This document shows positions 2,696 through 29,844 of a stretch of DNA of 64,000 nucleotides, piece by piece (the stretch's first letter is position 1; every line of letters starts with the position of its first letter). The notes below the pieces were generated by a model, which had not been told where the DNA came from, did no database searches, and saw nothing but the letters and a program-made list of their open reading frames with translations. Source of the DNA: Entomortierella parvispora E1425 (taxonomy: Eukaryota; Fungi; Mortierellomycota); assembly GCA_020891255.1 (NCBI GenBank), contig BQFW01000014.1, positions 1 through 64,000 of the forward strand, read 5' to 3'. A program made the translations under genes and the position numbers.

Positions 2696-3537
2696 ATGAA
2701 CCGCCACGCTGCCCCCCAGCACTCCCCCAGTGAGCTTCAAGACAGTTGTCCAAACCCCCAAGAAGGTCACCATCGACGACTTTGTTGGCGAGAATGGCCT
2801 GGTTCCCTTAACACAGGCCCACAGCCACCTTAAGGGCTCCATGATGAGTCCTAGACCCATGAATCCCTCCGCCCCCGCCAGAGGCAGGGCTCTCCCCACC
2901 CACACCGTCTTCGGCGGGTCCGATGACGAGGGGCAGGGGAGCGAGGACTCCAAGGAGGACAACCACCAAGATGACGACGCCGAGATAACGGACCCTCCCT
3001 CGGGACAGGGAGGACGAGACGGGGCAAGGCCATCACGTTGCTGACACCACGTACGTGGCTGATGCGGACGATGAGGCTACCCAACCATTGCCGGCGCTCG
3101 AGCAAGAACAAGACCTGTTGGAGATGGTGCCACAGAGCCCGCTGGAGACAATGGGGGGTGGACTCCCCCCCCTGTCACAGGCAGCGACTGGCACTGTCGA
3201 CCAGGCGCCCGTGGTTGACGTTCACCAACCACAAGACGCCCCAACCCCTATGCATCCGAGGCAATATACCCAGGCCCTGGAGACCTTCGTTCAGACTCTC
3301 CAAAGGCGCTTCGAGTATGTCGAAGCGCGCCTCAGGATACACGAGCAAGCCCAAGTAGGCGAACATTCGGCGATGCAAGGCTTGGATGACCTGGAGGACC
3401 AGTTCATGGATTTGAGTGATCAGATCTCTCATCACCTCTTCCGCCTCAGGCCACAGGCCCATCCCAAGCCCAAGCGTGCCCACTCCCGCCCCAAACCATA
3501 CCACTCCCGCCCCGCCTCCAGGCGTGGCCCCAGATAG
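2696..3537 (+). CDS. Putative ~280-aa orphan ORF with two apparent frameshifts in C-rich runs; acidic middle, coiled-coil-like segment, basic tail
   Basis: CCACCATG at 2696; ORF-track pieces 2730-3044 and 3055-3537 join by single-base shifts near 2715 and 2995 into a compositionally continuous protein; no family recognised. Confidence 0.4.
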
Positions 3538-4142: not shown

Positions 4143-5029
4143 TTGCTGTTCTTATATTTCGTTTTTTTTTTGAAAAAAAATTCTCTCTTAAGATGGAGGA
4201 GTGAAGTGGTGACAGGAGCCGAGAGCTAGCCACTTAGACACTTCGTAGCTACATTTCACGAAGTATGAGAAGGGAAAAGAGCAAAGTCTGCAGTTTGGGG
4301 TGAGAGAACGACTGTTGGGCGCTTGAAAGGACAATCCACTAGCAACAGGAGACCGAGTGTGAACCGTACACATGCTAGCTCTCTCTTGACTTCAGCGAGG
4401 AACTTGTAGCTCTCTCAAACAGTTTTTGCTCTCCTCATCGTGCATGTAGACAAGAACATCAGCTCGTGCAGTTGTCACGTAGTTTTTTATTAAAAGTTGT
4501 ACGCGCTAGACAAAAGGAGGAACAAGATGGCAGAGACGAAGGCGCAAGACAGACGAGAGTGAGGTGACTTTGCCCTGGAATCGTCTCGTTCCTCGCTAAT
4601 GCATGCTCTGCCTGAGGGCCAGAGAAATCTAGCAGTTGAGGGTAGAGAGGACTTACCTGAGAAGTGCGCACGCCTGAATTAATCACTCCATGCTTCCTGC
4701 ATGCATCTCGTTTGTCGCATGTCCACTCTGGTTCATGGCTAGATTGAATGAGCTTTCTCCGTATGATTAGATGTAAAAGAAGTTGTTGACGACAAAGGGA
4801 AGGAGTAGCGAGCAACGCGTGAGAAAGGAAGGAGAAAGGAGAGGAAACGCCCAAGCTTGCGTCAACAAGAAAAGAAGAGAGCGAAAACGAAGACAGGGGC
4901 ACAAAAGACCCGCTGATGTTTGATGTAAGAGTCGAGTTGGATGCATTGGGTCGGTTGAGACGGCGGCCGCAAAAGGTGAAAGATGTGAGCTCGATTCATG
5001 GGAGGAGAAGGATGCACGAGATGAGATGC

Positions 5030-5180
5030 AACAAAGAGAGATGCAGCAAAGAAGAGAGATGCAGCAGAGAAGAGAGATGCAGCAGAGAAGAGAGATGCAA
5101 TAGAGAAGAGAGATGCAATAGAGAAGAGAGATGCAATAGAGAAGAGAGATGCAACAGAGAAGAGAGATGCAACAGAGAAG
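5030..5180. repeat. 18-bp purine-rich minisatellite, about 8 copies
   Basis: Unit AGAGAAGAGAGATGCA(A/G)(T/C). Confidence 0.9.
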
Positions 5181-5414
5181 AAAGATACAAAAAGGAAAAG
5201 GGATGCAGGAGACGAGAGATGCAAAAGAGGAGAAAGATCCAAAAAGGAAAAGGGATGCAGGAGACGAGAGATGCAAAAGAGGCGAAAGATCCAAAAAAAG
5301 AAGACGGATGCTAGATACGGGAGGACAGGGTAAGGATGCAAGAGTCGAGGAGAAAGGAAGGATGCAGGAATCGAGACGAGAGACATGAGAGGAAAGGGAT
5401 GCAAAAAAAGAGAG

Positions 5415-5736
<322 letters not shown>

Positions 5737-6099
5737 TGCAAGAACTGTGGAATGCAGGAGACGAGAAGGTCAAACAATGCAAGAGACAAGATGAATGCAA
5801 GAGACAATATGAATGCAAGAAACGACATGAATGCAAGGGAAGAGAGGGATGCAAGGGACGAGATGGAGAGGACGAGATGGAGAGGACGAGATGAATGCAA
5901 GAGACGAGAGGGATGCAAGGAGGATGGGTTGAGATGGCAAGAGAAGGGAGGGAGACAGATGGGAGAAAAAGACAGGAGTTCTGGGATGCTCTATCCAAAA
6001 AACAACAACAAATGGAGCTGGCCCCATCCAAAAGAACATTGGTCTTGGGAGGGAAGAGGACAGGAGGAAAGAGAAGAGGAGGGAGAAGAGGAGGAACAA

Positions 6100-6297
6100 G
6101 AGGGAGGAGGAACAAGAGGGAGGAGAAGAGGAGAAGAGGAGGAAGAGAAGAGAGGGACGAGAGGGAGGAGAAGAGGAGAAGAGGAGGAAGAGAAGAGAGG
6201 GACGAGAGGGAGAAGAAGAGGAGAAGAGGAGGAAGAGAAGAGAGGGACGAGAGGGAGAAGAAGAGGAGAAGAGGAGGAAGAGAAGAGAGGGACGAGA
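6100..6297. repeat. 45-bp purine-rich tandem repeat, about 4 copies
   Basis: Translates as repeating GTRGRRRGEEEEEKR (15 codons) in ORF 5752-6423. Confidence 0.85.
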
Positions 6298-6421
6298 TCA
6301 GTCCATGCGGGTCCCTTTTGTGCTTTTTTTTTTTTTTTTTGCGCTGTCATCCCGAGGAAGGGTGGACGAGCACGAAACTCACATCGTGCGACCAAAAAGT
6401 GCAAGAGTGAAGACAAGAAAT

Positions 6422-6585
6422 GATCAAGACTGACGAACAAGAGAGACGAGAAGACGAGAGACGATCAAGACCGACGAACAAGAGAGACGAGAAGACGAGA
6501 GACGATCAAGACCGACGAACAAGAGAGACGAGAAGACGAGAGACGATCAAGACCGACGAACAAGAGAGAAGAGAAGACGAAAGAC
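6422..6585. repeat. 41-bp tandem repeat, 4 copies
   Basis: GATCAAGAC anchor at 6422, 6463, 6504 and 6545; unit GATCAAGACCGACGAACAAGAGAGACGAGAAGACGAGAGAC. Confidence 0.92.
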
Positions 6586-6884
6586 GACCAAGAGGGAAGA
6601 GAAGAAACTAAAGAAGGGAGAGAGAAGAAGAGAGGGACAGTTGACAAGTTCAAGAGAAAAGAAAACACCGTCAAGGGAAAATAAGAGGAAGAAAACGGTG
6701 GAGCAAGAAAGATGAGAAGAGGGGGAAGACACGAGAGGAACAAGACGGAAGAGAAGAGAAGAGAAAGAGGGAGAAGAGGAGAGGGACAAGGCGGAAGAAG
6801 AGACGAGCAAGAGAGAAGAGAAGAGAGAAGCAACAGGGAAGATAGTGAGTTCCGAAAGAGGAGGAGAGCAAAAAGGAGAAAGAA

Positions 6885-25082: not shown

Positions 25083-25262
25083 GACAATACAAGTCAAGGT
25101 GAAGAAAAAAAAAAGAGTTGAGTGGGCGATGTTGAGATTGCAAGACTTCTGGCATGGCGCTCTATTTAAACCTCTCGGCGATCCCATCGTTACGGCTGTC
25201 AATTGCTCCCTCAGCTCATGCATCGGGATCGAACCCGCCCGTCCCACCGTATCTGCACCATT

Positions 25263-25971
25263 AGTCCGCCTCAAAGTCAGGAGCACGTTTTGTACGTGGG
25301 TACGTTTTCCCAATTGGGCCTAATTGCGCTGGGATCAAATTCTTCAAAGGGGATTTCGTGCCCACCTTGATTTGGAAAACGGAGCCCTCCTCCTTCCTTT
25401 ACCGGCGAAACGAACCGTTCCACATAAACATGAAAACGTTCCAGCGAAAAAACTTAGAAGACCCGCAGCTTCGCGAGCACGCATCAGAGAGGGACAGGAG
25501 TCGTATCGCTGGATTGGGCTTGGCCAGGGCTTCCCCCATGAAGTGTTTTTTTTTTGTCTTTGATTGAAAGTTAGCAACTGACAGTGAAAATACGAACGAG
25601 AAACTCTTTTGTCTGCCATCCATGCATGCAAAGCCCAGCCATCCATGCACTACAAAAGAAGATGGTGCGATTCCGCTCGGTGAAGAGCGCGCAGTGTGAA
25701 AAATTAACGTACTACAACATGTACCTCTCATCTTTCGCCTCGTCCCGGGTCCCCAGTCTCGTTTTCATCCTCGTCCCCGACCTCGCTCCATCCTCACCTC
25801 CTAACCCCTCTCCATCCTCACCTCCCAACCCCTCTCCATCCTCACCTCCCAACTTCGCTCCATCCTCACCTCCCCAACTTCGCTCCATCCTCACCTCCCC
25901 AACTCGCCTTAATCCTCGCCTCCCCAACTCGCCTTCGTCCCCCCCTGGGACAGTAGCCCACATGCCAAAAA
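25263..25971 (+). repeat. Left terminal inverted repeat (709 bp) with internal 24-bp minisatellite (5 copies plus 1 diverged)
   Basis: Reverse complement of 28953-29610; mirrored ORFs 25399-25731 and 29142-29474 translate identically. Confidence 0.97.
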
Positions 25972-27361
25972 TTTCCGATCGTCAGAAAGCTTTGCGAGAT
26001 CTGGAACAAGCGTTTTTGCTTGGAGTCCTTGAAGCTGAAATAAATACCAATTCGAGCCACGACTCAGAAAACACCTCAGAAAACGACTCAGAAAGCGACG
26101 AGGACAGCAGCTCAAGTAGCGGTTCGGATGGAACCATCACCAGCGATTCTGAGAGTGACTCTGATCGCGAATGGGAGCTTGTGAGGCATATCTACATTAG
26201 CCATGTTTCTATTACAGAATCTCGGTATTTTGATAGACCCATAACACACCGACAAGTCGACAACTACTTTTTCACAACCAAGTTTTATTCTTACACGGAC
26301 GGTGAATTTCGACAACATTTCCGTATGGATAAAAATTCCTTTTCAGCTATCGCAGTCATTATAGGGCCTCACCCCGTTTTCCAGAACTCCTCACGGTGCC
26401 GCCAACTACATCCGTTTTGGCAATTGGCGGTGACACTTGAACGATTCGGACACTACGGTAACAGGGTGTCAGAGAATATGTTGGCCAGTGATTTTGGCAT
26501 CAGCCCAGGATCTGTTGTCTTGTGCACCAACAGGGTAATGACGGCGCTAGTGTCCCTGGTACCTGACTGGATACGTTGGCCCAATAGTCAAGAAAGGGAG
26601 AAGCACAGTCGGCTGATGCGCAGGGAGGGTTTCCCTGGTTGTGTTGGCTTCATTGACGGAACCACAATTCCACTGTCCCAAAAGCCTGCCCAAGAAGGAA
26701 CAGCGTACTTTGACCGCAAACAAAGGTACTCATCTGGTGCTCTTTTTCCAGTGTCGTAAAAGGATGTCCTTCTAAACTGCAAAAAATATGACGGTGGGAT
26801 AGGTACTCAGTCAATGCTCAAATCGTTTGTAACATGGATCGAGAGATCATCGCTGTTCATGTCGGCTGCCCTGGCTCTTCTTCAGACTCAAAAGTCTTCA
26901 GTAGAATGGATCAGTATAAATTGCCAGAGGACCATTTCTCTCCAGGACAGTTTCTGATTTCTGATTCGGCCTACGGGGCCACCACATTTTGTGTCCCTGC
27001 CTACAAGTCCCCCGAGGCAGATCATCCTGATAACACAGCTTTCAACTATTATCTGGCCTGCTCTCGAGTGCGAAATGAGCACTGCATTGGAGTCCTAAAA
27101 GGTCGATGGCAATCCCTTAAAGAGATGAGGCATCAACTCCAGAACGACCGCAGCATGAGACAACTTTGCTTCTGGGTCTTGTCCTGCAGCGTTCTACACA
27201 ACATGTTGGCCAAACTAGGCGATAAGTGGACAGATCCAGTGGATGCCCGCCCGGTAGCGTCAATATTTGATCCCCATTTTCAAGGTACAACGGGAGGTGG
27301 AGCATTCCGCGAAGCGTTAAAGAAGACAACACTCGAGACAAACAGAGCACAGGGCAGATAA
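25962..27361 (+). CDS. Harbinger-type DDE transposase (DDE_Tnp_4/HARBI1-like); intron 26726-26802
   Basis: FRQHFRMDKNSF; QLAVTLERFG HTH region; catalytic GFIDGT, LISDSAY, RVRNEHCIGVLKGRWQSL; SCSVLHN; no stops after splicing. Confidence 0.95.
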
Positions 27362-27428
27362 ATTTTTTTTCAGTGATGTAAACAATGGCTGATGGTGAAA
27401 GAACGTACTGTACATGGAGGTGGAGGGG

Positions 27429-28835
27429 CTACTCTAATACGTCAGTGTTCTCGTCGGCGTTCTCTTCTGGCCTTGACAAAAGGCCAAGGCCCTTGAGGAC
27501 ATCTGCGACAGTGTTTTTGTCCCAGCCTTGATCAAAGATTTTAAGGCGAATCTCGTGGTCTCTTTGCAGCTGCTGTTCCTTCGCTTTTTCGTCAAGCTTC
27601 TTGTAAAAGCGCTCCTGCCTCATTCTTTCTCTGATCTCCTTCTGTTTTCGTTTTTCTGCCGCTTCTGCTCTCCTGTCTTCTCACAAATAACGAGTGCCAG
27701 AGGAGGGAGAGAGTGTGTGAGAAAGAGACAGACATGTAATGAGAAAATGATCAAGTGCTCAGAAGTAAACGCACCTTCACGGTTCGCCGCCAGGAGGCTT
27801 TCCATTCCAACAAGGCCATTTGGAGTTTTTACTGGTTGGTGGCCGGGAAATAATGTCGGGTTTGGGGGGTCCTTCCGTATAGCGTTGGGCTTGGGATTCT
27901 TTGGGTCACCTTTGTCGTTGCTCGGAGGGGGCGTGGCCGAGCATTCAGGAGAGCGTCTTCTCTTGGGCTGAGAGGACCTGCTTGCAGTTGATGGCGCCGA
28001 GATTTGGGACCTATACTCTTGAAAGGCTCCATGATTCCTACTTAATGGCTCGTCCTCTTCCTCTTCCTCTTCCTCAACTTCATCTTCATTAAGTGGCTCG
28101 TACAGCTCGTGACCCAGCTCATCGCACTCTCCCTCTGCATCTAACAGACTCACTTCCTGAGATTCGTCGTCGTCATAGGCGCATCCCGACGAACCGAGAG
28201 TCAGAATGTTCACGCCTTTTGAAGCAAACGAAACCTTCCCTGCTGAGGTCCCTGCTTCGCATGGGGGGTTTAGGTGTGGACTTTTGCCGAACAAAGAATG
28301 CATCCTCTTATAACCATGACACCGATGCTCCAACTTCTCTTCGAAGGTGACGAAGTTGTCTTTTTCATCCAAACCTGCACCTGTGCTTAGGGCGTACCTT
28401 GCCGTTTCGAAAAAGGCAGATCTGTATCGTCGAAACTTTGCTGCAACGCTTTTCGTGGTGAATTTTTCTTTTGATCGCCCTTTTTCGGCCAACATTTTAC
28501 CAGCCCGAGTCCAGGCTGATTGGGCTCCTTCTTGCTTTGGCCCGACTGCTGTCTTTTGCGTGCCATAAACTGCCGCGTAATTAGTCTTGACCTCCAGCCA
28601 TGTCAGCATGAGTTCTCGCTCGTCATCCTTCGAGACCTTCTGCAAGGACGGCTCCACGAACTGATAATCTGCATCGACAGTGGAACTCAATCCTACACAA
28701 GGGCACGTTGTTAAAGTTAGAGGAAAATGACAATTGGGATTGCAACTGGATGACCAACTACAATTCGTTACCTCCACCGTTTTCGCTGTGGACTTGTTTT
28801 AACAAACGGTTAGTAGCTGCTTCGTGAAACTTCAT
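27429..28835 (-). CDS. Transposon ORF2, Myb/SANT-like DNA-binding protein; introns 28771-28693 and near 27770-27682
   Basis: LMLTWLEVKTNY..SAWTRAGKML..KSVAAKFRRYRSAF..STGAGL; acidic linker; spliced coiled-coil C-terminus EDRRAEAAEKRKQKE..DVLE*; an alternative start at 28962 needs one extra A (see findings). Confidence 0.85.
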
Positions 28836-28952
28836 ATTGCACCGTCTACGTAAGGATATCACTCACCACCATCTGGGTAGATCGTAGATAACGGGTGGAT
28901 CTTTGGTAAACCGGATTCGGACGACGAACCCTCCTCATTTTTTTTTATTATT

Positions 28953-29610
28953 TTTTTGGCATGTGGGCTACTGTCCCAGGGGGGATGAAGGCCAGTTGGG
29001 GAGGTGAGGATGGAGCGAAGTTGGGAGGTGAGGATGGAGAGGGGTTGGGAGGTGAGGATGGAGAGGGGTTAGGAGGTGAGGATGGAGCGAGGTCGGGGAC
29101 GAGGATGAAAACGAGACTGGGGACCCGGGACGAGGCGAAAGATGAGAGGTACATGTTGTAGTACGTTAATTTTTCACACTGCGCGCTCTTCACCGAGCGG
29201 AATCGCACCATCTTCTTTTGTAGTGCATGGATGGCTGGGCTTTGCATGCATGGATGGCAGACAAAAGAGTTTCTCGTTCGTATTTTCACTGTCAGTTGCT
29301 AACTTTCAATCAAAGACAAAAAAAAAGCACTTCATGGGGGAAGCCCTGGCCAAGCCCAATCCAGCGATACGACTCCTGTCCCTCTCTGATGCGTGCTCGC
29401 GAAGCTGCGGGTCTTCTAAGTTTTTTCGCTGGAACGTTTTCATGTTTATGTGGAACGGTTCGTTTCGCCGGTAAAGGAAGGAGGAGGGCTCCGTTTTCCA
29501 AATCAAGGTGGGCACGAAATCCCCTTTGAAGAATTTGATCCCAGCGCAATTAGGCCCAATTGGGAAAACGTACCCACGTACAAAACGTGCTCCTGACTTT
29601 GAGGCGGACT
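28953..29610 (-). repeat. Right terminal inverted repeat (658 bp) with 4 copies of the 24-bp unit
   Basis: Near-identical to the left TIR except for 51 bp of minisatellite and a few substitutions. Confidence 0.97.
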
Positions 29611-29844
29611 ATTGCCCTCATTTGCTCATAAAATATGAAACCCCTCCCGGGGACACACGCCACCAACTGGTCTATATTGAGACCCACCCGATTTCCTCTT
29701 TCGCCACAGCCGTGAGGCCGTTTCTCCCTGCTGCATGAATCTGATCATGTATCTGAAAGGGGCAACATTTGCCCTTTGTCAGCCCGTTTCCTCTGTGCAA
29801 AGGAATCGTGTGGGGGAACGTTTTTTTTTTAGAAAAAAAATGTA

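Follow-up and report, generated by a model that had tools for sequence, protein, structure and literature searches.

A two-gene transposon with long inverted ends

The window analysed here is a stretch of 64,000 nucleotides (positions 1 to 64,000, forward strand) of contig BQFW01000014.1 from the soil fungus Entomortierella parvispora E1425 (assembly GCA_020891255.1, 38.9 Mb in 20 contigs), and it begins at the contig end. Positions 25263-29610 hold a transposon of 4,348 bp with two convergent genes, encoding a DDE_Tnp_4 transposase and an accessory protein (open reading frame 2, ORF2). The terminal inverted repeats (TIRs) of this element occupy the whole interval from tip to gene on either side, that is, the entire 5' region of both genes.

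In a direct alignment, the two arms form one continuous inverted repeat, with one substitution and one 51-bp indel between them. The indel sits within a CT-rich 24/25-bp tandem array and represents a difference in repeat number. A repeat finder returned 25259-25890 paired with 28983-29614 (632 nt, 99% complementary) and an inner pair, 25940-25971 with 28953-28984, of 32 identical nt. Both arms stop directly after CACATGCCAAAAA, the innermost 32 nt finishing ...CCCACATGCCAAAAA. An earlier note on this DNA had described an inverted repeat reaching 709 and 658 bp inward to a common inner boundary; the alignment bears out the extents and coordinates, and the boundary is the same end sequence on both arms. 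An origin of the TIR as an assembly artefact was ruled out, as both full copies and diverged fragments carry it.

The transposase gene is well delimited (Table 1). Its second exon matches PF13359 with an E-value of 1.7e-18 and 67 bits (cut-off 24.8), and the motifs GFIDGT, SDSAY and RNEHCIG were found. Among 33 relatives the nearest come from Linnemannia and Mortierella (Linnemannia elongata and Mortierella sp., 53-57% identical), others from Phytophthora and a rust (Austropuccinia). Independent homologues begin with MPKESQRQ, MPKLSERQ, MPKRSERQ, MPRVSERQ or MPYTSERR; these align to MPKISDRQ in a conserved pattern, MP-x-x-S-x-R-Q, which the metagenomic relatives likewise display. Because the N-termini align at MP, ATG 25962 is, by sequence comparison, the real transposase start, as the earlier note had proposed, and the TIR enters the coding sequence by 10 nt.

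Table 1. Features of the transposon, in window positions
Feature	Position	Strand	Remarks
Left target site duplication, ATT	25260-25262		
Left TIR, 709 bp	25263-25971	+	starts AGTCCGCC; tip through 10th base of transposase coding sequence
CT-rich 24/25-bp tandem array, 6.5 units, left TIR	25774-25932	+	just upstream of transposase ATG
Transposase exon 1 (MPKISDRQ...FDRKQ-R)	25962-26725	+	N-terminus conserved; 33 relatives
Transposase intron, 77 nt	26726-26802	+	boundary may shift 1 nt; homologue alignment ...DRKKRYSxNxQV
Transposase exon 2, DDE_Tnp_4 domain	26803-27361	+	stop 27359-27361; Pfam PF13359
ORF2 last exon (DRRAEAAEKRK...TDVLE)	27429-27676	-	stop TAG 27431-27429
ORF2 intron 3, 98 nt (GTGCGT...AAG)	27677-27774	-	
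ORF2 main exon	27775-28692	-	conserved helical core ~28630-28240
ORF2 intron 2, 79 nt (GTAACG...CTCTAAC...TAG)	28693-28771	-	
ORF2 predicted micro-exon, 21 nt	28772-28792	-	public model P0034
ORF2 intron 1, 74 nt (GTGAGT...TACTAAC...AAG)	28793-28866	-	
ORF2 first exon region	28867-28962	-	mirrored ATG 28962-28960; second ATG 28938-28936
Right TIR, 658 bp	28953-29610	-	
24-bp tandem array, 4.1 units, right TIR	28999-29097	-	
Right target site duplication, ATT	29611-29613		

A second full-length copy lies on contig 11 (285119-289463) and has AAT on both sides, read in the same orientation. It differs from the window copy at 6 of 4,348 positions: a C-run of the left arm differs by one C and each of two A-runs (28938 and 28951) by one A, ORF2 has a TC>CA change, and the last difference is at 29327. 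These are the only full-length copies in the genome and all others are fragments, namely a transposase-side piece on contig 15 with ATT on its left, an ORF2-side end at contig 14:2147803-2148538, and two further derivatives that are rearranged and mostly TIR sequence. A genome search for more copies of the ORF2 5' region returned only the three known loci and no further ORF2. The element looks young and is possibly active in Mortierellaceae.

Two old derivatives of 0.8-1.3 kb (L013, C7:333770-335061, and L015, C15:201590-202392) are foldback-like and consist almost entirely of two TIR arms back to back. In each, the outermost ~35 bp are gone from one arm, so they are probably immobile rearrangements rather than miniature inverted-repeat transposable elements (MITEs). 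Within the element itself, the stops of the transposase and ORF2 genes lie on opposite strands only 67 bp apart (27362-27428), and the 3' ends of the two mRNAs therefore probably overlap and are complementary.

Affiliation of the element and its second protein

The Pangu group, called Harbinger2 in Repbase (PMC12730594), is recognised by a 5'-ANT-3' target duplication, TIRs that start with AG or GG, and a pair of ORFs, the second being free of known motifs (PMC4482050). The element has a DDE_Tnp_4-type transposase and TIRs flanked by a short target duplication, as PHIS transposons do. Its duplication is ATT in the window and AAT on contig 11, its TIR starts with AGTCCGCC, and the second of its two ORFs contains no known motif. 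The TWA duplication (TAA or TTA) of classic Harbinger elements was found neither in the window (ATT) nor on contig 11 (AAT) nor to the left of the contig 15 fragment (ATT). By these features, the element is a Pangu/Harbinger2-type PHIS transposon and not a classic Harbinger. With classic PIF/Harbinger it shares the DDE_Tnp_4 transposase, two genes and a 3-bp duplication; it differs in the sequence of that duplication, and its ORF2 has no Myb/SANT or MADF match in Pfam.

It resembles Pangu elements in its length class (~3.5-4.3 kb), in combining a DDE transposase with a motif-less ORF2, and in a distribution over fungi and oomycetes, although the Phytophthora and Austropuccinia matches fit the reported Pangu host range only loosely. 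The TIRs set it apart: at 658 and 709 bp they take in the whole 5' region and the first codons, whereas Pangu TIRs measure 11-40 bp across 34 families (PMC4482050). PIF/Harbinger TIRs as a whole range from 5 to 1042 bp, with 93% below 60 bp (PMC4482050). The length here is thus far beyond the reported range of the group and within that of the superfamily. The earlier note held PHIS TIRs to be usually tens of bp; in PIF/Harbinger, TIRs of up to 1042 bp were already on record.

ORF2 was searched exon by exon, with splice-junction frames checked by script and public protein P0034 as the joined reference. A word-based protein search gave a sole match, GJJ75478.1 (EMPS_07836) of E. parvispora itself, at 100% identity. 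Searches against Pfam and by PDB sequence and Foldseek returned nothing significant. The family to which ORF2 belongs has 175 members and a DNA-binding-like helical fold, whose similarity to the Zeste and Sap1 DNA-binding domains is weak only; the N-termini of its homologues are variable and uninformative. For the two-component Harbinger transposase/Myb complex of the earlier note the sequence gives no support: no Myb domain is detectable in the ORF2 sequence, and the element is Pangu/Harbinger2-like.

Maize MuDR, of the Mutator superfamily, likewise has two convergent genes, with promoters inside TIRs of ~0.2 kb, and makes a 9-bp target duplication; the MuDR TIRs are not known to contain the start codons. 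It is the nearest functional analogy, given the convergent genes and, in our element, promoters presumed to lie within the TIR. The differences are that MuDR belongs to another superfamily, and that the TIR here has three times the length and takes in the first 10 nt of coding sequence. A literature search for a start codon inside a eukaryotic TIR found no clear precedent, which does not exclude one.

The start of ORF2

The ORF2 side of the TIR reads differently in the two full-length copies. In the window copy, both A-runs (28951 and 28938) exceed their contig 11 counterparts by 1 nt. With the contig 11 lengths, the mirrored ATG leads into the whole of ORF2 once both introns are spliced. With the window lengths, the gene is open only from the second ATG, at 28938, and only if intron 2 is retained (frame A); in the frame of the public model (frame B) the window copy as assembled has no ATG whatever. 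The extra A's may be Nanopore homopolymer errors, since the assembly is Nanopore-based, albeit short-read polished (PMC8759367), and the copies are near-identical repeats. If they are not, the two additional bases would sever ORF2 from its start in the window copy, which would then depend on the other copy for this protein.

The public ORF2 model derives from the contig 11 copy (...VAH-MPKNNKKNEEGSSSESGLPKIHPLSTIYPDG, the 21-nt exon, LSSTVDADYQ...). This model, GJJ75478.1, passes through the mirrored ATG using two introns, and the annotation behind it came from AUGUSTUS, which was supplied with cDNA derived from RNA-seq (PMC8759367). In-frame ATGs of frame B occur exclusively within the TIR, so that in the contig 11 copy the TIR would also hold the only possible frame-B start of ORF2. 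Three concordant lines lean weakly towards this frame. Codon usage scores +0.08 bits per codon for frame B, -0.23 for frame A and -0.40 for the retained intron 2, with the element's known exons, the yardstick, lying between +0.06 and +0.15. Three substitutions separate this region from the old ORF2-side fragment; in frame B they read as synonymous, Ile>Leu and synonymous, and in frame A they entail the non-conservative changes Arg>Asn and Gln>Leu. Lastly, in intron 2 the branch site is a canonical CTAAC and the acceptor is TAG.

Several observations weigh against a start of ORF2 at the mirrored ATG. In the window copy this ATG reads ATG CCA AAA AAA TAA TAA, that is, MPKK followed by two stops, which the earlier note missed; its claim that the mirrored ATG points into ORF2 holds only for the contig 11 copy, where it is in frame through two introns. 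The old ORF2-side fragment has this ATG in the other frame. Between the two ATGs lie 24, 22 and 21 nt in the three copies, a spread in keeping with a non-coding leader. The mirrored ATG has a poor context, with C at -3; at the second ATG this position is A. Moreover, the frame evidence comprises 23 codons and 3 substitutions. An alternative reading, which the ATG contexts, the variable spacer and the two stops favour, has ORF2 start at ATG 28938, in frame A, 15 nt inward of the TIR boundary, and keeps intron 2. The mirrored ATG would then be a passenger upstream AUG, a short or overlapping upstream ORF brought along by the duplicated transposase leader, and the genes would share promoter and leader but not the start codon. 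From 28938 the frame is open into ORF2 in all three copies, provided that intron 2 stays in, and the variable N-termini of the homologues leave room for such a start. It nevertheless runs against codon usage, the intron 2 signals, the substitutions and the RNA-seq-informed public model, and we regard it as unlikely while taking it seriously.

The public ORF2 model itself begins further upstream in the TIR, at MYLSS..., and the frame is open through the CT-rich array in both arms. Both proteins could in that case start there, with the TIR encoding a shared Pro/Ser-rich N-terminal domain. We consider this highly improbable. The transposase homologues begin at MP, the 25-bp units break the register so that no peptide repeat is kept, and unit number differs between arms and between copies. 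CT-rich DNA is, besides, stop-free by composition.

History and possible use of the shared 5' region

Since the Met-Pro-Lys codons originally belong to the transposase, as far as the homologues tell, the long TIRs most likely arose when the 5' end of the transposase gene was duplicated in inverted orientation onto the ORF2 side of the element, with the junction in an A-run. An old transposase-side arm on contig 7 and an old ORF2-side arm (contig 14b) have the same ...ACATGCCAA boundary, each followed by its own gene, and in both the tandem repeat counts no more than 1-2 units. Among 536 sites compared, 16 show a state common to both old arms that none of the four young arms has; about 10 of these sites fall outside the repeat array. 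Given these shared states and the shared boundary, the comparison places the long TIR before a family divergence of at least 10%, with changes fixed on both arms. The pattern is that of concerted arm evolution or re-copying. The TIR homogenisation invoked in the earlier note is therefore upheld in so far as the arms changed together and older copies keep the same inner boundary; gene conversion or re-copying as the mechanism we infer. Arm distances within the old deletion derivatives are uninformative, as the arms of dead copies simply decay.

Beyond this family, a metagenome scan yielded six contigs of 1.2-3.3 kb with relatives, and both genes are present in one only, a 3.35-kb soil-metagenome contig (L024) that has the same convergent gene pair (transposase 45% and ORF2 24% identical). 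L024 has no inverted repeat when the ~270 bp 5' of its transposase are compared with the ~340 bp 5' of its ORF2, which also counts against the proposed architecture. Both element ends were seen in none of the six contigs, and the 24-nt tip motif did not occur above chance. In the E. parvispora genome, a degraded paralogous family has TIRs of ~150 bp with the transposase ATG ~900 bp inside, and five paralogous transposase loci show no inverted repeat of at least 30 bp. On these comparisons the long-TIR architecture, which the earlier note called a symmetric design, is specific to one lineage and not a design of the family.

Other features were noted around the relatives. Directly upstream of the ORF2 start of L024 are two 18-bp tandem arrays (3037-3247; 7.6 and 4.3 units), which echo the 24-bp array 5' of both starts in our element and may reflect a shared promoter or protein-binding feature; a further relative, L023, likewise has a CT-rich tract upstream of its ATG. 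Three distant DDE_Tnp_4 paralogues (G000:C10:402720, C9:974581 and C6:1303942) are 28-30% identical. Their long frames stay open for 423-487 aa, and within +/-5 kb there is no inverted repeat of at least 30 bp; they could belong to short-TIR families or be HARBI1-like genes that were domesticated. Dense nested inverted repeats of 170-308 nt that are 76-92% complementary (L050:161-1733, G000:C6:1299161-1300733) lie close to a distant PHIS transposase paralogue and probably represent another foldback-type or MITE family.

We put at roughly 65% the probability of the explanation that best covers the whole: a recently active, autonomous Pangu/Harbinger2-type element whose TIR carries the 5' regions and the starts of both genes. 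The duplicated piece would run from the terminal binding site through a CT-rich promoter or leader to ATG CCA AAA A. Because the TIR fills each space between tip and gene, it would supply whatever promoter the element carries; the promoter and leader that the earlier note had both genes share stand as far as this extent goes, and promoter activity is presumed. Pyrimidine-rich tracts are common near fungal transcription starts, and the CT-rich array directly 5' of the ATG fits such tracts by analogy. At the inner end the TIR holds the transposase start codon, and gene conversion or re-copying would have kept the arms alike over the at least 10% divergence of the family. Equal expression of the two genes, the hard-wired co-expression and stoichiometry of the earlier note, and any selective value of these might follow from this arrangement.

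It is also possible, although we think it the lesser prospect, that a single inverted duplication left the long TIR behind as a neutral by-product, with arms alike through the youth of the active lineage or re-copying and no selected benefit in co-expression or stoichiometry. The two-gene relative without such a repeat, the short TIRs and deep-lying ATG of the paralogous family, an array whose copy number drifts from 1 to 6.5 units and the presence of only two full copies are all in keeping with this. The same boundary on both sides in fragments at least 10% diverged, together with at least 10 substitutions fixed in both arms, argues against it, since the architecture has persisted and been homogenised rather than decaying. 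At the other extreme, the TIR could be a selected, concertedly evolving duplicated expression module in which the same promoter, leader and Met-Pro-Lys start fix the ratio of transposase to its DNA-binding partner, and in which any read-through RNA across both arms folds into a hairpin of ~660 bp directed at the common promoter and leader, a brake on copy number at the disposal of the fungal RNA interference machinery or of the element itself. We offer this as speculation that is probably wrong in its full form.

Away from the element, the start of the window contains, at 379-719 and 5023-6842, a satellite with 19 units of 18 bp, an (AG)n run of 326 bp at 5409-5733 and several purine-rich arrays of 13-82 bp. 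These repeats account for the marked skew in GC and AT at 4-8 kb and look like subtelomeric low-complexity DNA.

To conclude, two-component PHIS transposons need transposase and partner jointly, and the coordination of their expression is little understood. The wider significance of this element is moderate, as it apparently concerns one lineage and long TIRs as such were already on record. It nonetheless offers a clear-cut example of long TIR arms evolving in concert, in Mortierellaceae, a family of fungi with few genetic tools. If our reading is true, inverted ends that give both genes a common start codon and 5' region would coordinate the pair in a simple, natural way, and would be a parallel to MuDR in an unrelated superfamily that goes one step further, in that the coding sequence begins inside the TIR.

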